Source of the DNA: Neoconidiobolus thromboides FSU 785
Taxonomy: Eukaryota; Fungi; Entomophthoromycota
Length of the DNA: 38,385 nt
Direction: 5' to 3'
Assembly: GCA_025603075.1 (NCBI GenBank)
Contig: MU626442.1
Span: forward strand, 1-38,385
Of the stretch, positions 48 through 37,199 are shown in pieces. Position 1 is the first letter of the stretch; each line of letters begins with the position of its first letter. Under the pieces are notes generated by a model. The model ran no database searches. It was not told the origin of the DNA and saw nothing but the letters and a program-made list of their open reading frames with translations. The translations under genes were made by a program, and so were the position numbers.

Positions 48-201
48 CAAAACTATCCAAAATTCAAATTATTTGACTAAAAAAACAAAGTTTAAAAAAA
101 AATAATTTAAAATTAAGCAATGTCATATTAATTAAACTATTAGCTGATAACACTTTAATGTTGAGTAATACTCGACTCTATTATTTCACACTTAATTAAG
201 C

Positions 202-309
202 ATATGGGGATGTATTTTTGTGTTTAAGAATTTCACTAACAAATTTTCCGCTTAAATAGTGCTTAAAAAATAGAAAAAATAATGAAGTCAAAAAAACACT
301 CCCCCATAT
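202..309 (-). mobile_element. ~100-bp MITE copy 1 (young subfamily, orientation B)
   Basis: ATAT-GGGGATGTATTTTTG...AAAAAAACACTCCCCC-ATAT; ~15-bp imperfect TIRs; nearly identical to the copy in the amidase. Confidence 0.92.
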
Positions 310-733
310 AAATCTGTATATGAATCTGTATATAAACCTGTTATGTATATTTTTTTTATGTCCAAGGCTAACATTGTTAGATTCAATTTACTTTCTATAA
401 CCTAACAATCCGTTTCTTTTTTCCTATTTTCTTACTCATTGCTCTTAGTGCTATTACTTTCATTACCTTTTTTTATACATAATATTATGATAATACTTGA
501 TGCCTAGCCTAGTTAATTATAAGATTCTAAAAGCACTAAAGTGTTAACTAAAATTTATTATCTGGCATTTAACTAGAAAATATAACAAACTTGTTTAGGT
601 AATATTGCTGCTATTAATTGATTTAAAGATTATAAAGCCTATTTAATAATTTGTTTAAATTTCAAGTCATGTTTAATATAATCCTTACTGTATACCAAAT
701 ACCTATTAGTACTTAAAGCCAATTAAAAGTATA

Positions 734-9649: not shown

Positions 9650-11545
9650 ATGGATCAATCAGAAGGTAAGAAAATATATTGAAATCATCTCAATATAAGA
9701 ACATAGAACCAATTTCGATTTTATAAATTAACTCAATCAAAAAATAAACCACTAACAAAACAAACATAGATTTTTACAAGTATAAAAGCGAATTTATGGA
9801 ATGGGCGAACAAAAATAATTTAATAAAATAGAAAACAAAAATAACATGAATATTATTGATTTTAGCAACAAGGACGATTCAAGAGTTAAGTTTAGGGATA
9901 GTTGAAAGGCGCTGGAAAGCGATTGAAGTATTAAACTATTTTCAACAACAAGCCCGTTTAGCCCATGAAAAAACAAATTGTGTAATGGTATTTATGGATG
10001 GATACAGCGAAAAGGCAGCTGAAGAAATTGATGCCAACATAAAATCTGGTAAAGAATATGATTTAAAAGAGTATCCATTGCTAGGTGTTCCAGTATCCAT
10101 AAAAGATATGGGAGTGTTTTTTTTGACTTCATTATTTTTTCCATTTTTTAAGCATTATTTAAGCGGAAAATTTGTTAGTAAAATTCTTAAACACAAAAAT
10201 ACATCCCCATATACTAGATGTAGAAGGGTACGCCACTGTCGCCGCATATCAAATGAATGTAGGAGGAATAGAAAAAGAAGACGCTGGAATTGTGAAATTA
10301 ATTAAACAATTAGGTGGTATTCCATTTTGTAAAACAACTATATGTCAATTCGCAATTACTACTGAAAGTTCAAGTTCTTTACATGGTACTACACATAATG
10401 CCTACAATCCAGAATACTCAGCAGGTGGTAGTAGTTCTGGTGAAGGACCTTTGATTGCTTTAAAAGGCTCTCTTTTAGGTATTGGTTCTGATGTCGGTGG
10501 AAGTTTAAGATATCCAGCAGCTTGGAATGGACTTTATTGCTTCAAATCTACTTCCAATATCTTACCAACAAATGGTACTTTTAAATTTGAAAAAGGCCAA
10601 ACATTTATTAAAGTGGTATCAGGGCCTATGGCTAGCAATATGAATGATTTAAAGTATGTATGGGATGCCTTTTTAACCAAAGATTTACAACCTTTCGACC
10701 CAAATTGTATACCATTAGCTAAGAAAGAGTCATATATTAAGAAGAAGAGATTTGGTTACTTTACCTCTTGTGATAGCTTGCCTTCTACACCAGCTGTACA
10801 AAGAGCAGTCAATGAAGCTGTACAAGCATTACAAAACCAAGGATATCAAGCAGTAGAATTTAAGCCTACATCAATGATTGATATATATAGTCTAGGTAGT
10901 AAAATCCTTGGAGCCAACTCAAGTGAAGAAAGCCTAAATAAAGTAACTTCAGAAGGATATCATCCAACAATCCAGCAATTGATACTTTTTACAAAACTAC
11001 CAGGATTTGTAAAATCCAGCTTAGCTTATGTTTTAAACTTACTTGGTGAAAAATTGTTGTGGCATGGGCTTAATATCCAAAGAAAAAGAAGTGTTGGAGA
11101 GCTTTGGAATATACAACATGAGATAGAAACTTACTTTACTGAATTTACAAAACATTATGAAGAATTAGATATCGAATTTTTGATCTCTCCAGTACATGGC
11201 CTCCCTGGTCATAAACATGGTAGTTTTATGAAAACCGTTCCTGGCACTTCCTATTCTTTATACTTTAACCTTTTAAATTTACCATCAGGTATAATACCAG
11301 TTACCAACGTTGATCCTAAATTGGATTCTTTTGAATTGAATGAATGGTTGAATAGTAAAATTAGTAATGGTCTTAACTTAGGAAGGAAGGGCTTAAGTGA
11401 CCTTTATGGTTGCTATGATGCTACTGAAATGAAAGGTCTTCCAGTTGGATTACAAGTTAGTTGTAAAAGATATGAAGATTCTAAAGTATTGGAAGCTATG
11501 CAGACAGTGGATGATGCTTTAAAAGAATATAAAAAGATAAATTAA
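9650..11545 (+). pseudogene. Amidase-signature (FAAH/acetamidase-like) gene frameshifted by a 103-bp MITE insertion
   Basis: PLLGVPVSIKD (catalytic Lys), AGGSSSGEG, GSDVGGSLRYPA (Ser-Ser). Removing 10110-10212 joins ORF 9856-10305 to ORF 10172-11545 as KD-ILDVEGY. The first exon ATGGATCAATCAGAAG|GTAAG (9650-9665) spliced to AG|9866 is inferred. Confidence 0.88.
10106..10212 (+). mobile_element. MITE copy 3, inserted in the amidase coding sequence
   Basis: ATAT-GGGAGTGTTTTTTTTGAC...CAAAAATACATCCCC-ATAT; precise removal restores the reading frame. Confidence 0.95.
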
Positions 11546-12736: not shown

Positions 12737-14405
12737 ATGGAAAAAAACCGGGGAATAAGAGAATTGTAAGTAATATAACAATATAACTTGTGATAATTAA
12801 CTCTAAAAATACAATAGAGAAATAGGTATCTTGGAATATTTATATCGTAAAGGATATACTCAAAGTTATAATGAGTTTCGTAAAGAAAGTGATATTGATA
12901 TATTTCATCCCAAACAAAATGGGGAGGATACTATTGTACAAAATCCCAGGGTGAACCATTTGTTAGAAAAAAAATGGAGCTCAGCGTCTAATTTACAACA
13001 GAAGGTAAACTATCATCTTAATTTTTCAGTATTAAAACTAAGCTAAATACATAATTCCATTTAATAATATCTGAATTTAGGTAATAGAATTAGAAGAAGA
13101 ATTAAAGCAAAAAAAGGAGAATAAAAAAGAGAGTCAATTTAATAAAAATTATTTACCAAAGCCACCAAAGTTATTAGAAATGTCAGGACATAGAATGGCT
13201 ATTACTGCTGTTTTGTTTCATCCAATTTATAACTTATTATTTACTGGTTCAGAGGATTGTACCATTAGAGTTTGGGATTATGAGAATGGAGGCTATGAAA
13301 GGAGCATTAAAGGACATACGAAACCTATTCATCAGTTAGCAGTTTCCAATGAAAAAGGGAGTTTATTAGGTAAATATAGTTAGACTAAGTAGAGATTTTG
13401 TAACAATAGAATCCAAATTAATTATCTCCTTTATTTAGCTTCCTGTTCTAGTGATTTAAGTATAAAAATATGGGATATCAATAATGATTATCAATGTATA
13501 AAAACCTTAATGGGCCATGATCATTCTGTTTCTTCAATTAAATTTAGTCCCAATAATGATTTGCTTTTATCCGCTTCAAGAGATAAATCAATTAAGGTTT
13601 GGGAAGTTAGTACTGGGTAATTGAAATTTATCTTTTTATTAGTATGAATTATTTACATTAATATTTTTAAATTAGTTATTGTTTAAAAACAATTAATGGT
13701 AATAGTGAATGGATTAGAAGTATTGATATTTCTTTAGATTGTAGTACTATTGTAGCCGGTTCTTTTGATCATGTAACTCAGTTGAATTGTTTTTATTTAT
13801 ACTTAATAATTTTTATTCTAGATGGTAAGGACGTATGATTTTAATTCGGGAGAATTAAAGAATATACTTAAAGCCCATAATAATGTGGTCGAATATGTTA
13901 ATTTTTTACCAATTCAATCGTATCCATTTATTAAAGATTTGTGTGATTTAAATGTAATTAATATAATTTAATTTATTACTAAAAACATTTTTTATCATAA
14001 TATGTTTAGACAATTCCAGATGTACCAGGTCAATTTATAATATCTTGTTCAAGGGATAAAACATTGGCTTTATATAATATTCAAGGCCAAGTTTTATATC
14101 AATTTGTAATACTATTTTATTATATTTATAATATAAATATATTAACAAATTTAATATTAAAATTTATACAGAAAGGACATGATAATTGGGTAAAACAAAT
14201 GGTAGTTACTGGAGGTGGTAAATATATGTTAAGCATCAGTGATGATAAAACATTAAAAGCTTGGGATCTTCAAACAGGAAGAGTATTGCGTACTATTTTA
14301 TTGGACGAACAATTTCCTACTTCCATCGCTATGTCAAAAGATGGCTTATATTGTGCTACTACTTTTCCAGATGGTAAAATCTCTATTTGGAATTGTTTTA
14401 AATAA
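12737..14405 (+). CDS. PAC1: LIS1/PAC1/NudF dynein regulator (LisH, coiled coil, WD40), multi-exon
   Basis: Spliced start [10 protein letters not shown]|[13 protein letters not shown] (LisH), [85 protein letters not shown]; GT-AG introns between ORF fragments. Confidence 0.88.
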
Positions 14406-14727
14406 AAATAAGAATGAGAACAAAAACATCATAGCGGAATAAACATTCATATTTATTGTTTTTATAAAATTAGTTACTATTATGTTATTATTTTAAAATT
14501 TAGAAGTATTAAAATGAATATACTTTATTTTTTAATGGTTACTTTTTTTATGCCTATTCAAAGCGGAACGTTCAGTAAATGATTTACCACAGTAGTCAAT
14601 ATCGCAAAACAACCTAGGTTTATTAGGTTCAGTGAACTCTAATTTAGGGATAGGTATATGATTTGAATCATTCACTATTATATAAAAAAATATTATTTAA
14701 ATCAAAAAAACAGTTTTAAAGACAAAA

Positions 14728-15257
14728 CTAATGGATTTTACCAATCTCAAAAAAGGGCAGACTATGGCCATTAACTTCTGCTTTAACTTTTTGATATTTC
14801 CTTACTTTATAAAATTTATTGACTTTAAATCCTTTAAATTTTTGTTCTTTTAAAAACTGATGTAACTTAGTTTGTTGTAGTAACTGAAAATTAACATCTC
14901 GACGTAAACGTTCTCGTCCAGCTATTATTAAAATTTACTTATTAGTCTACTATTATTAGTTATTATAACTTTAAATTTACTTATTGAATATCCAGATATA
15001 TCTTTTATACATGGTGGCCTAAAGGAGATGATTACTTTTTAGTTGAAATTCTATATTCAATAATTTAATTGTTATCATTACCATGCTCTTTTACCAAATT
15101 TTGAATAATTGCCATTGACATTAAAATCAATCATCTTTTCATTGTTTTCTTCTTGTGCTTTTGTATTTAATTCTGTTGTATTTTCATTTTGTTGTGATCT
15201 CATAGTTGAATCCATTGTATTCTCATCCTGCTGTAATATTTCTTTTAATGAAGACAT
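14728..15257 (-). CDS. Predicted small 3-exon hypothetical protein (~135 aa), not in the ORF track as a gene
   Basis: Exons 15257-15082, 15018-14981 and 14921-14728 join in frame through 63- and 59-nt GT-AG introns with CTAA branch-like motifs: MSSLKEILQQ...GKRAW|PPCIKDISGYSI|TGRERLRRDVNFQLLQQ...EIGKIH*. Confidence 0.5.
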
Positions 15258-15344
15258 GTTTTGTATTATTTTTGTTTTTGTGATTTAACTAAGATTGGTT
15301 ATAGATCAACTTGATGTTTATTCATAAGTAAATTTAAATTTGCA

Positions 15345-15449
15345 ATATGGAGATGTATATTTGTATTTAAGGATTTTACTAACAATTTTTCCACTTAATT
15401 AGCACTCAAAAAATGGAAAAAGTAATGAAACCAAAAAACATCCCCAAAT
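15345..15449 (-). mobile_element. MITE copy 4 (orientation B), between two divergent genes
   Basis: ATAT-GGAGATGTATATTTG...CCAAAAAACATCCCC-AAAT. Confidence 0.9.
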
Positions 15450-15554
15450 GAATTCTCATTTGAAGATTAGAAAACAAACTTCAATAGATTCAAAAATAAT
15501 ACCAGTTTTTAAGAATCACTATCAGTTCAAATCTGACATTTTACAAATAAAAAC

Positions 15555-15592
15555 TGACTCACTTCAAACGAATTTATCAATTTAGCCAATCA
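15555..15592. promoter_or_regulatory. TGACTCA (AP-1/Gcn4-type) plus CCAAT box upstream of the transposase-derived gene
   Basis: TGACTCA at 15555-15561 and AGCCAATC at about 15583-15590, 165-200 bp before the ATG at 15756. Confidence 0.35.
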
Positions 15593-15755
15593 AATTTTCA
15601 ATTATTCTATTTTTTAATGTAATCAAATCATCAATTCATTAGGCATTTTTAAACAGAAAGATGCTTTTTTATAGAAATTAACTTAAATTCAATCAGTTTA
15701 TTTTTTGAATTCAGCATCATTAACACTTGTACTCTATAATCAAAATAAATTTAAC

Positions 15756-17354
15756 ATGTCTTCAGAAAAGGAATTTAATAATGGAACCAATGGATTTACT
15801 TATATTCAACCCAAACCCAACAACGACATGATAGAAGACGATATAATAAATGCCAACGAAATGGAGGAAGAAAGTTTTAATCATACCAATTTTAATTTTG
15901 AATCCAATAATCAATCTTTTCAACCAGATGCTTCCAATTTAAGTAATTTTAGTTTAAAATCCACTTATCATTCTTTACAACAACTTGAGAACGAGCGACA
16001 AAACCTTGAAAATGAGAGGAAAAATGTAGAAAAGAAAATAATGCAACAGCTTAAAGAAGAACAGAAAAATATTGATAAAAAGATTAAAGAAAAGATGAAA
16101 AAAATAGAGCAACTAAAAATGGAAATATTTCATGATCAGAAAGATAAAGAAGCACTAGAAAAAAGATTATTAGAAATGAAAGGACTAAAGACAAAGCCAG
16201 TAATAAGGGGTATCAATCAACCAAAAGTACTATTGACTTTTTCTAATAACTCAAAAGCAAGACAACCTAATATTGATCGAAAATTAAATATGATTGAAGA
16301 TTTTAAAAGTCGAACAATGAGTATTAAAGATATATGTGAAAAGTATAAAATTACAAGACAAACATTTTATAATATTAAAAAAAGTTATCAGGTTTATCAA
16401 GCTGGTTTAGAAGTGGAAAAAGAAGATTCAAGAGGTCGAAATTGTTTATTAAATAAAGATCAATTAGCTAGTATATTTTATGAAGTGGAAAGTCGACAAA
16501 ATGGAGAACAAACGGGTAGAGAATTAGTCAACCTTATTCAAGAACAATTTGGTAAAAAAGTATCTACTAGTACAATCTATAGAGGTTTATTGAAAGCAGA
16601 ATGTACTTGGAAAACTAGTTCTAATATACCAGGCTATTGGAATGAACCTCAGATTTTAGAGTTAAGAAAAAAATTTGTTCAAAGTTTACCATATGATCGA
16701 AGGAATAAAAAAGAATATTATGTGTGCGAAATTAGTTTTAATTTAGATTTAACTTTAGGTTATACCTGGGCATTAAAAGGAAATACAGAAACACTAGAAA
16801 AGAGAAATAAGTCAAAACCTATTCATTTACTTTTAGCTATCTGTAATTCAGGTGATATTATTAAAATGTATTTTAATCGAGATAAAAAAGAAATGTTGAA
16901 ATCAATTACAGAAGAAGAGTTTAAATTATTTTTTGAAGAAAACATTCATTTGTTTAATAATTCAATTGTTTATTTAAATAGTAATAAAGTTTATTCAACT
17001 GCATTTACTCATCCTAAATTTACTAATAAATTAATGGAAAATAATATACATTGCATCTGGTATCCACTTTATTCACCTTATTTAAATCCAGCTGAATATT
17101 TTACTAACTATTTAAAAAGAGATGTTGGTGATAAACAATACAAATCAAGGGATGAATTATATTTTACAATTGAATGTAGTATTAATTCTAATTATACTAC
17201 TAGAAATATTCAGCTGTTCATTGATAAAGCAGAATCTTTATTTCAAGACTGTTTAGTTGAATCACCTATTGTTGGATTTATATTACCTAATATCAATCGA
17301 ATAGAAGTTGATAATCAAAATAATTTAAATAGTTCTAGTATTAATAGTACTTAG
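15756..17354 (+). CDS. IS630/Tc1-mariner transposase-derived protein with N-terminal coiled coil and degenerate catalytic triad (candidate domesticated gene)
   Basis: HTH (MSIKDICEKYKITRQTFYNIKK), second HTH (TGRELVNLIQEQFGKKVSTSTIYRGL), DDE_3-like motifs YYVCEISFNL..YTWALKG (cf. FIDESGFNL..W..KG), IVYLNSN (cf. IVMDNA) and PLYSPYLNPAEYF (cf. PPYSPDLNPIE). No stops or frameshifts; likely ATG at 15756. Confidence 0.85.
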   Translation: MSSEKEFNNGTNGFTYIQPKPNNDMIEDDIINANEMEEESFNHTNFNFESNNQSFQPDASNLSNFSLKSTYHSLQQLENERQNLENERKNVEKKIMQQLKEEQKNIDKKIKEKMKKIEQLKMEIFHDQKDKEALEKRLLEMKGLKTKPVIRGINQPKVLLTFSNNSKARQPNIDRKLNMIEDFKSRTMSIKDICEKYKITRQTFYNIKKSYQVYQAGLEVEKEDSRGRNCLLNKDQLASIFYEVESRQNGEQTGRELVNLIQEQFGKKVSTSTIYRGLLKAECTWKTSSNIPGYWNEPQILELRKKFVQSLPYDRRNKKEYYVCEISFNLDLTLGYTWALKGNTETLEKRNKSKPIHLLLAICNSGDIIKMYFNRDKKEMLKSITEEEFKLFFEENIHLFNNSIVYLNSNKVYSTAFTHPKFTNKLMENNIHCIWYPLYSPYLNPAEYFTNYLKRDVGDKQYKSRDELYFTIECSINSNYTTRNIQLFIDKAESLFQDCLVESPIVGFILPNINRIEVDNQNNLNSSSINST

Positions 17355-17474
17355 TCCTCAAGTTTAGCATTACTATTACTTGGGTTTCTAGTTTAAGTAG
17401 ATATTACTTAATCTTCGAATTTAAGTCATTTATTTTGATTATTATGGATTTAAACTAGTAAATATTATATATTA

Positions 17475-17552
17475 TTTGAGAGTATTTTTGGGGGTATTTT
17501 TTAAACGCTATTTGAGTGGATAAAGTATTAGTAAAATTCTTAAACAAAAAAA
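17475..17552 (+). mobile_element. MITE copy 5, truncated/degenerate
   Basis: Core TTAAACGCTATTTGAGTGGATAAAGTATTAGTAAAATTCTTAAACAAAAAA matches the family; termini eroded. Confidence 0.7.
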
Positions 17553-17639
17553 ATGAAAAATGAGAAATAAAATTCAAAATAGAATAAAATTACATCTATA
17601 ATAAAATTTTAATTTAATTTGATTCTTCTTATTTTAATA

Positions 17640-20332
17640 TTAGCAAGAACCAAATCTAGGTTTTAAATGATCAAACATTAATTTATCTTCTAAGGTAACT
17701 GAAGCAGCAATCTTACTTAAAGCTTTAACAAAATGATGTTGTTGTACAAATAATTTTAATTCCAAATTACTGCTATCTTTAATATCGAAATTAATGTTTT
17801 CTCTCAAAGCAATAACTGCTGCTTCTCTAACTAAAGAAGCTAAATCGGCACCACTAAATAATAAATTGATAAAATTAATATTATAAATTTATAGTAAAAA
17901 TAAAAACTTACGAATAACCTTCACATTTACTATCATAAGCAATTTGTTTTAAATCAATATTTTCATCCATTGGTGTTTTTTTACATATGGTTTTTAATAT
18001 TTCATATCTTTCTGCTGAAGTTGGTAATTCAACGTATAATAATTTATCTAATCTACCAGGCCTTAACATAGCTGGATCGATAATATCTAATTAAATAATA
18101 AATTCGTTGGTTTGTTGATTTTTTTATTTTTATCAATTAAATTTACCTGGTCTATTAGTAGCTGCAATAATAAATACATTATTTCTACCTTCGGCACCAT
18201 CCAATTCTGTCAATAAAGTATTAACTACTCTAGCTGATACTTCTGATTGATTTTGATCTCTTTTGGAACATAAAGCATCTAACTCATCAAAAAAAACAAT
18301 ACAGGGAGCAGAGGCTCTAGCTCTTAAAAACACTTGTCGAATAGCCCTTTCACTTTCCCCGACATATTTATTTAATAGCTCTGGTCCTTTGACAGAAATG
18401 AAATTAGAATGAGATTGATTAGCTACTGCTTTAGCTAATAATGTTTTTCCACATCCTGGTGGTCCCCATAATAATACCCCACTTGGTCGACTAATTCCCA
18501 TTTTTTCAAATAATTCAGAATGTTGAATAGGCTCTACTACTGACATTCTTAATTCTTCTCGAATATTAAATAAAGCACCAATATCATCAAAGGTAACATC
18601 GGGTACAGTGGCAAATCCTTCTCTTTTACTACTGGGTTGTACTTTTTTCAAAGCTGATTTAAAATCTTCCATGGTTATATAAATTTGATTTAATTGTTGA
18701 TTATTTAAAGGTTGAGGATATTTTTGTAGAAATTGTTGTATTAAACTAGTTTCATTTGATACATTATTGTTCGTATTTATTACTTGTTGTTGTTGCTTTA
18801 CTTCTATTATTTCTATTTCTTTAACATCTTCTTTAACAACATTCTCTATTTCTTTGTTGCTTTCCGTAGCGGGTGTTTCTATTTCTTTAGTATCTTCTTT
18901 CATAATAATTTCTGTTTCTTTATTGGCTACTTCTTCAACTATCTTTATTTCTGTAATATTTTCTTTTACTGTTTCTATTCCTTTACTCTCCACTTCTTTA
19001 ACATCTTCTGTCGTAATATTATTATCTTGTAAAATACCATTTTCATTTTCCATTTCATTTTCCATTTCATTTTCATTTTCTTCCCCAGTTAAATCGACTA
19101 ATTCATTAAAATCCAATTTACCTTCTTTTAATAAATTAAAGATTCTTTTAACCGCAATCATACCAGCTGTGGAAGTTAAAGCTTCTAAATCAGCACCAAC
19201 ATAACCAGGCGTATTTTTGGATAAATATTTAAAATCAATCTCTTCTAATATTCGTAAATTTTTACATAATACCCTTAAGATTCTATAACAAAATGGAATA
19301 GAAGTTAATATATTACTATAAAAATAATATAATTAATTTACTTTTCTCTACTCTTTTCATCAGGTACACCAATACTAATTTCTCTATCAAATCTACCTGC
19401 TCTTCTTAATGCTGGATCAATGGAATCCGGTCGATTAGTAGCTCCAATTACTAAGACTGGTTTGTTGTCTGTCTTATCAAAGGATAAATCTATAAAAAAA
19501 CCAACAATTAACATTTCTTATTTATAATAATAAAATTGATCTATTTACCATCTAAACAAGTAAGTAATTGAGCCACGATTCTTCTTTCCATTTCTCTTTG
19601 AGCTGTTTCCCTTTTTGGTGTAATAGCATCAATTTCATCTAAAAACAATAAACATGGTGCATTCTTTTTCACCTGTTCAAAAATATTTCGTAACTTTTTT
19701 TCACTCTCTCCACTCATTCCTGAGACTACTGAAGGTGCTGAGACAATAATGATAGGCACTTTTAATTCTCCTGCAATCGCATTCGCTAATTTTGTTTTTC
19801 CTACACCTGGTGGTCCATGAAGTAAGATACCTCGGGGAGACTTTATTCCACTATGAATGTAAATTTCTGGATGAGTAATTGGTAAAGCTATTAATTCTAG
19901 GATTTCCTATAAGAGTTTGAAATAGAAGTTAATATTGGCAGGAGATGTCCTTTTTTTTAAATTTATTACCTCAATAATCGCTTCAATACCACCTAAATCT
20001 TTTAATGTAATCGTTGGTATTTCAATATTAACTATAAAATTAAGAAATTAGTTAATGAACCAATGACGCTATTTTTTAGAACTATTTACTATTTTTATCT
20101 TCTCTCTTTTTCTTTTTTACTGGTTCTTCTAAAGTATCGTCTTTTGCTTCAGTATCTGGCTGAGATTCTACTTCTTTTTTTTCTTCTGATTTGACTTCTG
20201 CTTCACTTACTTTAATCCCGCCTTTACCCCATAACCCTGTGATCCTTTTATTCATATTATTATTCTATTTTTTATTAGCATATTTCGTATTTGTATTCTG
20301 TTGGATTTATTTACTTTAGTTTTTCTACTCAT
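17640..20332 (-). CDS. RIX7: Rix7/NVL-type double AAA+ ATPase (60S ribosome biogenesis), multi-exon
   Basis: D1 [13 protein letters not shown]...[30 protein letters not shown]; D2 [45 protein letters not shown]; [11 protein letters not shown]; N-terminal MNKRITGLW; C-terminus ...PRFGSC*. Confidence 0.93.
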
Positions 20333-21245: not shown

Positions 21246-21811
21246 TTTTTTTATTGATTAAAAGTTGTTGATTTGAGCTGAATCGGATCTGATAATCAAA
21301 ATAGTAAAAATTGGACTAAATTTGAGATTTTAATCAAATAGACTCAACTCGCGTTTTTACTATTGCAAAAATTGAGTGTTTATTTTATTATTAAAACTCA
21401 ATAAACTGTTCACATAAAATTGCTTAAGTAAATATTATTAATTTTTGATATTATTATTGTTAAACATTTTAATTTGTTTATTTATTGTAGTAGAAACTAT
21501 TTTATTAATATACCAAAAATACAAATATTTATTTAATGCTTTAAAATTTTATATCCTAATAATATTTTTCTTCAATTAGTCATGTTTTCTGGTATTTTTA
21601 TATAGAATTAAAATTTAAAATAAATACTTAATGTCTTTAAACAATATGTTTATAGACAACGTTTTACTTTTTATCATAGTATATATTAAGCGTTAATCAA
21701 AAATAAAACCAACTTAAAAAATATCTATATATAAAGCCTAAGATAAATTTTACTTATCTTTATAAATGGTTTTGATCTTTAGCCTTTATAATAATTATTC
21801 AATACCATCAG

Positions 21812-21915
21812 TAGGGGATGTATTTTTGTGTTTAAGAATTTTGCTGATAACTTTTCCACTCAAATAGTGCTTAAAAGATGGAAAAAGTAATGAAGCCAAA
21901 AAAAACACCCCCAGT
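21812..21915 (-). mobile_element. MITE copy 6 (orientation B)
   Basis: TA-GGGGATGTATTTTTGTG...GCCAAAAAAAACACCCCCA. Confidence 0.9.
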
Positions 21916-22019
21916 ATATAAATACTCTTAAAGCCTAAAATAAATCAAATTAACTATTTTGAAAGATACAGTAAATTTTAACATTTAATAATTAAAAATA
22001 ACTCTTATAATTTTTAAAC

Positions 22020-24135
22020 ATATTATCTTCATCTTTTGATTTTCTTCTAACTGAAGAATCATGACTAACTTTATTATTATTATCCTTGGTTTAACTGAAT
22101 ATTCTTTGATTTTGACAAGTTGATTCAAAACGTCTTGACCAGTAGCATCTTCCTTGCTATTTCTATTCTTTATTATTACTTCTGGTTTACTATTTTCTTC
22201 TTTTACTTTAGCTAAATAAAATTATTATTAATTCACTATTAAAAGAAAACAAAAAATAAAATTTACATATATTAATACATTTCAAACATGTCATATTATT
22301 ACAATTATATTTAAGATCTACTTTACACCTTTTATCTAAAACACAATATATAACTACTAAGTTTTTAGATGATTTTTTCTTTTGAAATCAATCTTGATAA
22401 TAAATCATCAATCATTAAATAAAATTGTTGATGATTATTTTTAGCAGATATCATATAATGATCATTTAAATATTTTCTTCAAAACAAACTTATTGAATTT
22501 AAATCATATTTTATTTTTCTTTTATCTATTGTATATACTCTTAAATGTAATTTGTTATGAGGTTTAATACCATTTTTAATCCTTATTAAATCTTTGAAAG
22601 GTATATTAGTATGTATCAATAATACTTTTGGTAATTTTTAAAGTTTTATTTGTTGTTGATATTGGGAACAATATATTGGAATTACTTTTGTTGAAAATAG
22701 TCCATTAAACATTGTTCAATATTTTTATAATTTCACCTCTCCTTCATTGGTATATTCGAAACTGAATAAATTTAAAAAGTAATTAAAATTAAAATTATTA
22801 CTTTGTCCTTTTATATTACATTTACTCTCTTTTATATTACATTTATTCTATCTTTTGTAACTATTCCAAACATTTGACGTATAGGATTATTAATTTAGCC
22901 AATTTTATTCGATAATCTAAATAAACTCAATTATCTAATAAATACATTTAATGTATCAATAATATTTTAATTACTCTGAAGGATGATTTAATTCATAACA
23001 TCTTTCAATTTCTTCAAGTAATTTCAAATTCACCAATATCCTTATTTTATTTATAATAAAATAATAGATATTATTTCAAGCATCTTTAATACCATCCAGC
23101 GTTTTTTCTATTAATAAATTACTTACATTCCAAATGATTATATGCGGATGTTTTTTTGATTTCATTACTTTTTTCATTTTTTAAATGTTATTTGAGTGGA
23201 AGGATTGTTAGTAAAGTCCCTAAACAAAAAAATACATCCCCATACCTTAGCATTAAATCTTTAAAATACCTTGAACTTGATTCTTCTGTTTTGTTGTTCA
23301 TCTTTATTACATTACTTACATCGGCTTTTTCTTTTTCATCTATTTGTGCAACTATAATAACAAGTTAAATTAAAAATTAAATTTATCTATAAAACAGTAC
23401 TATTAAATACTACTTACCTTTCTTATGACCAATCAAATGAACATTCCTAAGCCTTTTTAACTCTACTATTTTTTTTAGTAATTTCAACTCTTTTAGCTTC
23501 GAAAAATTCTTCTGTTTCAATACAATCTCCTAAAACATTTTTATTCATTTACTTCAAAACAACCCATTTCTTTTCTTGATAACTATTTAAAGAGTTTTAT
23601 ATAATAATCTTTAATCATATCAAATGCATCTTTTCAACGCCAGTCTCAAAATTACTGTTATTAATCTCATTTTCAATCCCTTATGAATTTATTAATACTT
23701 TTTAAACTTATTTTTACATAATTAGCCACTTACTTAACAACTTGAGAGCATTTTTACTCTTATATACTTTTTCATTTAATTGAATAGCAGCTGAAAAACT
23801 ACCAGTATTAAACCTTGAAATTCCCTGGTTACCACAAATGTTATCTTCAATATCAATTTCATCTGAATTCATCAAACCAATTAAAGATCTTCCTATTTTT
23901 TGATTATTAAAAGTGGAAGTTAAATCATCTTCTTTAAAAAAATTGTAAAATTAGTTGGTGATCTTAAAGCTTCTTGACCATCACAATAGTATTATCCAAT
24001 ATTTGTTTCATTAAGATTAAATGTTGTATTGGTAAATCTCACTAGTCTTTGATTATTAAATATAAGAATTACAATGTCTTTTTGAGCTCTCCTTGTAGAT
24101 TTGGGGTTTTTCATACCGTTAAGATATCCATCCAT
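22020..24135 (-). pseudogene. Intron-containing pseudogene of unknown family with premature stops and a MITE insertion
   Basis: MDGYLNGMKNPKSTRRAQK... start; GTAAGT..AG introns that join frames (KLL|RIENEINN; GHKK|VAQIDEKE); several in-frame stops and frameshifts; removing the MITE restores MLRYNHLE. The 3' boundary is approximate. Confidence 0.55.
23140..23245 (+). mobile_element. MITE copy 7 (orientation A), in an exon of the pseudogene
   Basis: ATAT-GCGGATGTTTTTTTG...AAAAAAATACATCCCC-ATAC. Confidence 0.92.
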
Positions 24136-25700: not shown

Positions 25701-26004
25701 AAGTTGCTCTAAACTAGTACTTTCTTATAAACTTATTTTAATAGTTTCAACTAATAAATAAATTTTATAATTTGGTATGTTATTATTATTATACTTTATC
25801 ATTATATCAATAATTAGTAATTTTATTGATAATTTTATTTAAACACCAAAATCACTATAAAAATAATAATATGCAATAAGTTACAAACTATATAAAACAA
25901 ATAAAATAAAAAATATTATTGTAAGGTTTATTTAAAATATTATAAAACTTAATAGCTTTATTAAAAAGTATAATATTAAAAAGTAATATTAAAAAAGCTT
26001 TAAA

Positions 26005-26110
26005 TTATGGGGATGTCTTTTTTGACTTTATCACTTTTTACATTTTTGAGTGCTATTTGAGTGGAAAAATTCTTAGTAAAATTCTTAAACGAAGAAATAC
26101 ATCCCCATTC
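26005..26110 (+). mobile_element. MITE copy 8 (orientation A)
   Basis: TTAT-GGGGATGTCTTTTTTG...GAAATACATCCCC-ATTC. Confidence 0.9.
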
Positions 26111-26186
26111 TAATTTTAATAATGTTAAGAAACTTAAAAATTATAACATAAAAAAATAAATTAGATAATGACTTTTTAATTAGTTA

Positions 26187-26290
26187 AAATGGGGGTGTTT
26201 TTTTTACTTTATTACTTTTTCTATCTTTTAAGTACTATTTGAGTGAAAAAATTATTAGTAAAATTCTTAACCACAAAAATACATCCCTAA
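26187..26290 (+). mobile_element. MITE copy 9 (orientation A)
   Basis: AT-GGGGGTGTTTTTTTTT...CACAAAAATACATCCC. Confidence 0.88.
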
Positions 26291-26320
26291 ATGCTGAAAA
26301 CACATTAAAACAAATTTAAG

Positions 26321-26426
26321 ATATGAGGATGTTTTTTTTGGTTTCATTACTTTTCCATTTTTTAAGCTCTATTTGAGTAGAAAGATTGTTAGCAAAATCC
26401 TTAGACAAAAAAATACATCCCCATAT
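26321..26426 (+). mobile_element. MITE copy 10 (orientation A)
   Basis: ATAT-GAGGATGTTTTTTTTGG...AAAAAAATACATCCCC-ATAT. Confidence 0.92.
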
Positions 26427-26527
26427 GGATATATATTTTCTTGTTTAAAGTTTTATTAACAATTTTTCCACTCAAATAGCACTTAAAAAATGGAAAAAGT
26501 GATAAAACTAAAAAAATGTTATCATAT
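26423..26527 (-). mobile_element. MITE copy 11 (orientation B), abutting copy 10 as an inverted pair and sharing one ATAT
   Basis: ATAT-GGATATATATTTTC...CCACTCAAATAGCACTTAAAAAATGGAAAAAG...TATC-ATAT. Confidence 0.85.
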
Positions 26528-26551
26528 AATAATAATAATAATAATAATAAT
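26528..26551. repeat. (AAT)8 microsatellite between MITE copies
   Basis: Direct reading of the sequence. Confidence 0.9.
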
Positions 26552-26581
26552 AAATTAATAAAAATAATATTTAATAAAAAG

Positions 26582-26688
26582 ATATGGGGGTGTATTTTTG
26601 TGCTTGGTAATTCTATTAATGATTTTTCCACCCAAATAGCAATTAAAAGATGTAAAAGTAATGAAACCAAAGAAAACATCCTTCATAT
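26582..26688 (-). mobile_element. MITE copy 12 (orientation B)
   Basis: ATAT-GGGGGTGTATTTTTG...GAAAACATCCTTC-ATAT. Confidence 0.9.
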
Positions 26689-33314: not shown

Positions 33315-34315
33315 TTTATAAGATTTAATTTATTACAACAGTGGTTATATACGAATAAAGGTTTCTAAAATCAAAGAAGTTTAATCCAGTCAGGGAACAA
33401 ATATAATTAAGAAAATAATAAAATAGAACTTATTTATATAATTCAGTCATAATAGTCTTTATTCTTTAGTCACTATATCATAAATTAATATTCTATTAAT
33501 AACTTTGTTTGGCTATCATTGGCTCACTTTCTTTATTTTTATTTTCAAGCCTTAATGATGTCCGAATTTATTTTACCTTGAAGCATTAAATGATATAAAT
33601 ATTTCAATTACCAATTAACTCTGTTTTTCTCTGCCTTAATTGGCTTTTTATATTTGAATTATTACGGAAAAGATAACTTTGTTATAAAGATTCATATTTA
33701 TTCTTTAATTTATCCGTCCTTGTTATCATTTGTTGTTACTTTGTTGCTCCTTTTTTCTTGGCTACCTATTTTTATAACCTCAAAGTGAAATTTTGCTTGG
33801 TTTAAATAGTAATTTCAAATCAAAAATAAGAAACATTATTAACCAAATGTATTAAAATAACTAAATTTTATACATATTTAAAAATCATATTAAATGTTGT
33901 AACTTTTAATATAAGTTATGATATAACTATTGAACCTATGTTATATTTAAATATCATTATTAATTTAAATTAAAGTATATAATAGATGATACTAGTTTTA
34001 CCTAATCATTTCAATCACAGACCTAATCTAAGATTGCTAACGGTTCCTTATCATTTTAATTTTATCTTAAATATATATACTAGACTCAAAAGACTAGAAG
34101 TGAGTTTATTAATAAAAAGTGTAAAATAGAGAAAAAGAAAGGTACTTCATAACGAAAACTCATTATATAAAATACAAAGTTATTAGAGACATAAACTCAA
34201 TTTGCTATTTACTAATAATTCTCTGGGTCATTTAAAAGCAACTGTATAAAATTATAAACTTTAACTTTTTTGTATATTTAGGCTTTATTTATTAAAACTT
34301 AAAGTTTTAGAAAAT

Positions 34316-34418
34316 ATATGGGGGTGTATTTTTGTTTAAGAATTTTGCTAACAATTTCTTCACTTAAACAGTGTTTGAGATGGAAAAAGTGATGAAGCTA
34401 AAAAAAACATCCCCATAT
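34316..34418 (-). mobile_element. MITE copy 13 (orientation B)
   Basis: ATAT-GGGGGTGTATTTTTG...AAAAAAAACATCCCC-ATAT. Confidence 0.92.
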
Positions 34419-37001: not shown

Positions 37002-37108
37002 ATATGAGGATGTTCCTTTTGGTTTCATCACTTTTTCCATTTTTTAAGTGTTATTTGAGCGGGAAGATTATTAGTAAAGTTCTTAAACACAAAAATACGT
37101 CCCCATAT
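37002..37108 (+). mobile_element. MITE copy 14 (orientation A)
   Basis: ATAT-GAGGATGTTCCTTTTGG...CACAAAAATACGTCCCC-ATAT. Confidence 0.92.
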
Positions 37109-37199
37109 ATTATCAAAGTTTACTATTGATAATAATAATAAACTTAATCAAGCAAAGTATAAAATTAGTGTTTTAGGGAAAACAGGAAATAAAATCAAC

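Follow-up and report, generated by a model that had tools for sequence, protein, structure and literature searches.

We identified in the fungus Neoconidiobolus thromboides FSU 785 a transcribed single-exon gene that is, with a probability of about 0.65, the immobilised and catalytically inactive descendant of a DD38E-spaced IS630/Tc1-type transposon, kept as a Neoconidiobolus host gene and belonging to a small family. Its product would, with comparable probability, be a domesticated dead transposase with predicted DNA binding through a pair of helix-turn-helix (HTH) modules and oligomerisation through an inherited helix. The gene lies in a stretch of 38,385 nucleotides, called the window here, and the features discussed below are collected in Table 1. 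A first-pass annotation made from the letters of the window had proposed a domesticated host gene. The degenerate active site, the immobility, the single copy, the transcription and the constraint among paralogues all uphold that proposal, while the fusion, the uniqueness and the upstream motifs that it had also invoked did not survive.

Table 1. Features of the candidate gene, its surroundings and its relatives; positions are those of the window unless a locus is named.
Feature	Position	Strand	Basis or remark
CDS, IS630/Tc1-derived protein with degenerate catalytic triad	15756..17354	+	single exon, 532 aa + stop
Disordered N/S-rich region, aa 1-67	15756..15956	+	pLDDT < 50 (AlphaFold)
One 74-residue K/E/Q-rich helix, aa 68-141	15957..16178	+	AlphaFold, pLDDT ~90
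Two helix-turn-helix modules, aa 173-280	16272..16595	+	Pfam HTH_28, HTH_32, HTH_33; AlphaFold helices
RNase H-like DDE-type domain, aa 319-500	16710..17255	+	alignment A2, model topology, Foldseek
Catalytic codons	C324 TGC 16725-16727; N408 AAT 16977-16979; E447 17094-17096	+	
Unspliced transcript contig	15703..17563	+	RNA run X2, same organism: 1882 nt, 0 differences, depth 68
Head-to-head neighbour, spliced, multi-exon	14476-15389	-	CT..AC joints 14674/14742, 14921/14981, 15017/15081
Complete MITE copy, both ends (TGGAGATG ... ACATCCCCA)	15346..15448	+	blastn, alignment of 14 copies
MITE copy, degraded, internally deleted, inverted, in candidate 3' UTR	17496..17554	-	blastn, alignment of 14 copies
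MITE copies in the window	192-324, 747-861, 10106-10212, 15346-15448, 17496-17554		
MITE copies in the window	21761-21968, 23131-23281, 25984-26681 (five copies), 34288-34418, 37002-37149		
Paralogue loci	L002 6001-7291, L004, L001, L003 1-400		MU626621.1, MU626961.1, MU626886.1, MU626400.1
Complete canonical-triad transposons	L005 3779-5555; L007 1685-3844		TIRs 34-50 bp, start TTACTT, TA-flanked

The contig around the gene has a G+C content of 25% and is eukaryotic, with introns. As first described, the gene is a single intact open reading frame, running unbroken and with no internal stop for 532 codons from the ATG at 15756 to the TAG at 17352-17354. Pfam matches to HTH_28, HTH_32 and HTH_33 at aa 172-286 and to DDE_3 at aa 323-468 (E 8.9e-14), together with an AlphaFold model computed from an input alignment of 19 sequences, bear out the earlier view that the HTH modules and the DDE_3 scaffold are kept. 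In the model, HTH1 spans aa 173-215 and HTH2 aa 234-280. The NCBIfam IS630 transposase model was matched over positions 12-288 of 299 (E 8.8e-24), with a score of 84.5 bits that falls short of the model's cutoff of 100 bits. A sequence search of the PDB with the candidate protein gave no transposase match; the relationship to transposases among PDB structures came from the fold search, in which Foldseek matched the model to Mos1 (E 2.5e-8), to Metnase/SETMAR (TMt 0.71-0.73, with an rmsd of 3.2-3.7 Å and 13-17% sequence identity over the catalytic domain) and to Sleeping Beauty (0.60-0.62). The candidate thus has the arrangement that characterises the IS630-Tc1-mariner group, with paired HTH modules ahead of an RNase H-like DDE/D domain. 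The N-terminal N/S-rich stretch and long helix noticed earlier are also found in the model, as a disordered head (aa 1-67) and a helix with a pLDDT of about 90 (aa 68-141). From its predicted structure, this helix is probably a coiled-coil oligomerisation element.

The catalytic positions had been read from the sequence as C, N and a retained third residue, and both the alignment and the predicted structure agree, placing C324, N408 and E447 at the canonical D, D and E positions. In the model, C324 lies on beta1, N408 immediately behind beta4 and E447 where a helix begins, all three being the canonical sites. With two of its three acidic residues replaced, the protein is catalytically degenerate as proposed, and the D, D, E/D triad of active IS630-Tc1-mariner transposases is missing. 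Both aspartates are present in every one of the 14 more distant relatives in alignment A2, and the glutamate in 13 of them, with P0014 carrying K instead; D1 sits in Y(V/I)DE(S/T)GFNL, D2 in LDNxxIHH and E in LNPIE. The spacing between D2 and E is 38 residues in the candidate protein, as in 11 of the 14. The family motifs IHH and KGRA are gone from the candidate copy, the paralogues having lost fewer and kept D2, and the fold-defining motif YSPxLNPxE is retained.

As to alternative acidic residues at the catalytic positions, a possibility raised at the outset, none adjoins N408 in the alignment and the model, and the acidic E325 directly follows C324. E325 is one of the points in favour of a still working transposase, or of a protein acting in trans as the partner of a MITE, with a non-canonical active site. 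We consider this very improbable, as both aspartates are replaced, nothing acidic stands beside N408 and the gene is single copy; the evidence from the MITE itself is given next.

The gene has no TIRs and no TSD of its own, and to this extent the earlier statement that TIRs are absent was right. It went too far in that an inverted repeat of 55 nt, 80% complementary, is present around the gene (arms 15360-15414 and 17496-17550), both arms being copies of a MITE. We rejected this repeat as the gene's own TIRs. The upstream arm belongs to a MITE that is complete in itself and the downstream arm to an internally deleted remnant, so the two are separate insertions and not the ends of a 2-kb element. 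The TA-flanked TIRs of active IS630-Tc1-mariner elements are lacking at the candidate gene, which has no element ends and occupies a fixed single locus, as expected of an immobile sequence.

The MITE family has a form of about 105 bp, TA|TGGGGATGTATTTTTGTG...CATCCCCA|TA, in which the target duplication TA could equally be read as ATAT. At least 14 copies occur in the 38-kb window, about one per 2.7 kb, and MITE copies on both sides of a gene are therefore expected by chance. In the reads the family reaches about 2000 times the single-copy depth, corresponding to thousands of genomic copies, and it is present in many promoters and UTRs of this genome. These numbers, the TA (or ATAT) flanks and the inverted copies on either side of the gene are what would speak for a working transposase or a MITE partner. 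Against this, the flanking copies do not form the ends of one element, and the MITE ends (TGGGGATGT...) are unlike the TTACTT... ends of related transposons. The MITE was also rejected as a binding partner: an internal MITE sequence, ATTACTTTTTCC, resembles the TTACTT... ends, but 72 of 1000 shuffles score as high. The dispersed repeat had no tRNA or Rfam identity, and no partner transposase for it was identified.

Several further observations concern the MITEs and their neighbourhood. In DNA and RNA runs alike, MITE depth exceeds single-copy depth by a factor of hundreds to thousands. The upstream copy sits between the candidate gene and its head-to-head neighbour, and it lies in the neighbour's 5' UTR or promoter, since the RNA contig of the neighbour extends into it. 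Elsewhere in the window, an amidase frame at 9856-11545 (Pfam Amidase, E 1.1e-65) consists of two overlapping ORFs around the MITE at 10106-10212. The upstream motifs to which the first-pass annotation had drawn attention carry no statistical weight: the window has three TGACTCA sites where chance alone would give 2.75, and we rejected the sequence as a meaningful promoter motif.

Copy number and expression, both proposed earlier as checks on the gene, gave results in line with a resident host gene. The candidate gene is single copy, with a DNA depth of 32-69 in run X5 against 19-115 for its neighbours. The window contains no second copy of it and no other IS630-like relics (148 related proteins as queries), and no near-identical copies of the gene or its protein were found in protein databases. 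The many near-identical, TIR-flanked copies that were to be expected of an active transposon are likewise not found, the nearest paralogues having at most 68% DNA identity. An unspliced RNA contig with defined ends shows that the gene is transcribed. Its first AUG is the ATG at 15756, the 5' UTR measures at least 53 nt and the 3' UTR about 209 nt, ending in the MITE remnant. RNA contigs of two other organisms likewise cover the gene, which thus has the host-mRNA expression of a domesticated transposase. The setting between host genes is also as first described: in the same RNA run the neighbours on either side form spliced contigs with GT..AG joints, at depths of 271-673 against the candidate's 68. 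A DNA contig from organism C (17120-18033) links the candidate gene to the AAA ATPase gene next to it, with two differences.

The coiled coil had been taken for a fusion marking co-option, and this part of the first interpretation has to be abandoned. The nearest relatives outside Neoconidiobolus (P0004-P0027), drawn from metagenomes, Logan assemblies, JGI and a EukProt transcriptome, are 17-25% identical to the candidate protein in alignment A2 and 21-29% in phmmer matches. In those with a canonical triad the N-terminus is charged and helical and the C-terminus bears a G-PF-G-x-L-P motif; for one of them, P0005, a helix is predicted at aa 12-59 (AlphaFold). At least L005 and L007 reside in real transposons, given their TA-flanked TIRs, and their transposases also bear the long N-terminal helix. 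Since canonical relatives carry the equivalent helix, two of them within such elements, it is inherited and ancestral to the transposon clade, and we rejected the coiled coil as a domestication-specific fusion. The candidate protein fits this clade in its spacing of 38, in its helix and in a C-terminal motif weakened to SPIVGFILP. It differs from these relatives, which share with it the long helix, two HTH modules, DDE domain, C-terminal motif and spacing, in its catalytic residues (C, N and E against D and D in 14/14 and E in 13/14), in lacking the TIRs of L005 and L007, in an extra N/S-rich disordered head of about 67 residues and in the greater length of the helix.

A quick IQ-TREE analysis unites the Neoconidiobolus copies in a single clade (SH-aLRT 100) with a stem of 2.08 substitutions per site, sister to the canonical clade (SH-aLRT 90). 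The length of the stem suggests that a burst of change preceded the duplications. Neither the candidate gene nor the helix-bearing transposon clade was found described in the literature searched, and this DD38E-spaced clade, revealed by the analysis through the long N-terminal helix of its transposases, seems to be without a name. In outline, Intruder (DD38E) of the Tc1/mariner group is described as an animal family of narrow taxonomic distribution and a sibling to DD34E/Tc1 (PMC7731502). It shares with the candidate a D2-E spacing of 38, a likeness that may be coincidental.

The candidate had also been regarded as a lone intact survivor, and this was mistaken. It belongs to a small lineage-specific family, consisting, on the sequence data, of the singleton and a tandem array elsewhere in the genome. 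Exhaustive HMMER searches of 1.84 billion representatives recovered only four close proteins, all from N. thromboides FSU 785 (GCA_025603075.1), and among the same representatives no homologue of more than about 28% identity was found outside this assembly; there is accordingly no deep conservation, a point against the host-gene reading. In a word-index protein search, the full query was dominated by low-complexity words, and limiting it to aa 165-520 returned one paralogue. The paralogues lie at contig ends or on contigs of 1.5-2 kb, whose ends overlap (L003/L004 98%, L001/L003 93%), and each short contig opens on the C-terminal part of a copy and runs into the next. This pattern implies three or more copies in tandem. 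The array breaks the assembly, and its flanks seem to be an RNA12-domain gene on one side and a BEACH/WD40 gene on the other; the public models of its copies (385, 386, 261 and 121 aa) are truncated or have doubtful introns. Its contigs hold the same MITE family as the window. DNA differences among the array copies amount to 23-32%, and at the protein level these copies show 33-40% identity to the candidate. They share with it the MSSxNEFNN start, the N/S-rich stretch, the KIEQLK core of the helix and the HTH modules, and all are open to the ends of their contigs. Wherever D1 is visible in them it is Gly (GGA), and D2 and E are kept.

Selection was estimated over the transposase part by the Nei-Gojobori method. 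The dN/dS ratio is 0.21 for L001 against L002 (dS 0.89) and 0.09 for L002 against L004; for the candidate against its paralogues it is 0.31-0.47, values that are unreliable because dS is at or above 1, near saturation. Under neutrality, about 27 stop-creating changes would be expected at d=0.5 and about 1.6 at d=0.03 per lineage (ts:tv ~7). Paralogues still open at 33-40% identity, with dN/dS of 0.09-0.47 and some 27 stops expected, imply long purifying selection, and on these comparisons selection would clearly have acted through most of the history of a family already without D1. The same evidence bears on the idea that the gene is just one more copy of a multi-copy transposon family in decay that never had a host function. 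The confinement of the family to one lineage fits such a history, but its copies are 23-32% apart in DNA and all open, they are arranged in tandem and not dispersed, no TIRs were found around the array copies, D1 is lost in every copy where it is visible, near-identical copies are lacking, and dN/dS is well below 1 among copies that had already lost D1. We judge this origin to be improbable.

Whether the candidate copy itself is still maintained is a separate matter. Its family may have been functional for long, and the singleton may now be drifting as a recently dead relic, still open and transcribed since little time has passed. Such an outcome is rather unlikely in our estimation, though it deserves more weight than the other alternatives. 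The copy has lost two catalytic residues as well as IHH and KGRA, more than the paralogues, which keep D2; its terminal branch is longer than those of the paralogues (0.58 against 0.38 and 0.12), and its RNA depth is 4-10 times below that of its neighbours. Alleles from organisms C, D and E, represented by RNA contigs of two organisms and one DNA haplotype, are 5.5-7.7% divergent (30 differences in 388 nt; 66 differences in 1206 nt). Among the 40 allele differences listed of about 394, aa 13-53 have nine non-synonymous and four synonymous codons and aa 128-137 have one and three. The catalytic half, at 6.3-6.8%, is nearly as diverged as the disordered head (about 8%), as drift would produce, and over the allele split only about 1.6 stops are expected, so that the open frame is weak evidence of present-day selection. 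There is also a possible loss of 4 nt in one haplotype.

Other properties of the alleles and of the transcript run counter to drift. Despite 96 substitutions in 1594 nt, the alleles have no indels. The HTH stretch (16269-16765) is the least diverged part, with 18 differences in 497 nt (3.6%), about half the divergence of the remainder. The transcript is bounded by defined ends, the ATG at 15756 is the first AUG in it, and fold-defining motifs such as YSPxLNPxE are kept. We take present-day selection on the candidate copy to be likely, and favour a maintained host gene over a relic.

If the gene is a maintained host gene, its history and function might be as follows. The ancestor would have been a DD38E-spaced IS630/Tc1-type transposon with a long helix, two HTH modules and an RNase H-like domain. 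With Cys and Asn in place of the first two aspartates, the present protein would no longer cut DNA. It is probably a sequence-specific DNA binder that oligomerises through the 74-residue helix, and the dead catalytic domain may have been retained for structure or for interactions. Most likely it would either repress or regulate the ends of related transposons, or serve as a chromatin or transcription factor like CENP-B/Abp1. A more specific proposal is that the dead-nuclease family, as oligomers, binds transposon-end-like sites, possibly within MITEs, and so silences MITEs or regulates adjacent genes; we regard this version as unlikely.

Hosts have repeatedly gained DNA-binding proteins by co-opting transposases, and domesticated transposases are well known as a phenomenon, of which the candidate would be a plausible case with a predicted function. 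Like the candidate, SETMAR/Metnase, derived from the Hsmar1 mariner in primates, is a transposase of this superfamily turned into a host gene with a mutated triad. In SETMAR only the third residue is changed (DDN), some nuclease activity is kept and a SET domain is fused, whereas the candidate, from an entomophthoralean fungus, has replacements at the first two residues (C and N) and carries no foreign fusion. CENP-B and the fission-yeast proteins Abp1, Cbh1 and Cbh2 are pogo-derived, paralogous host proteins of the same superfamily, with an N-terminal paired HTH, a degenerate DDE domain and a separate dimerisation element. They are of pogo/Tigger origin, which belongs to another Pfam DDE family, and dimerise through the C-terminus. 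We use them as a working model for the candidate family, the likeness being one of general descriptions. Documented co-opted transposases of fungi are, to our knowledge, few and mostly pogo-derived, and our literature search found none for Entomophthorales. The present case, if true, would be an IS630/Tc1-type co-option in an early-diverging, insect-associated fungal lineage, unusual in that the dead transposase itself grew into a gene family by tandem duplication. Its practical value will be modest until DNA binding or a phenotype is demonstrated.

The divergent alleles also point to the nature of the material. Over positions 13700-19500, as seen in runs X5 and X6, the DNA of organism C comprises two haplotypes of about the same depth; the first is almost the same as the window and the second differs from it by about 6%. 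For the neighbouring AAA gene, both forms are also present in the RNA run from organism D, and the divergent form matches organism E. Together the two haplotypes suggest hybrid, heterokaryotic or mixed material. In run X5, one haplotype lacks 1+3 bases at 16047-16051, in the A-rich, helix-coding stretch; this loss would shift the frame unless compensated, and it does not appear in the RNA contigs of organisms D and E. Overall, the allele differences have a transition-to-transversion ratio of about 7:1.
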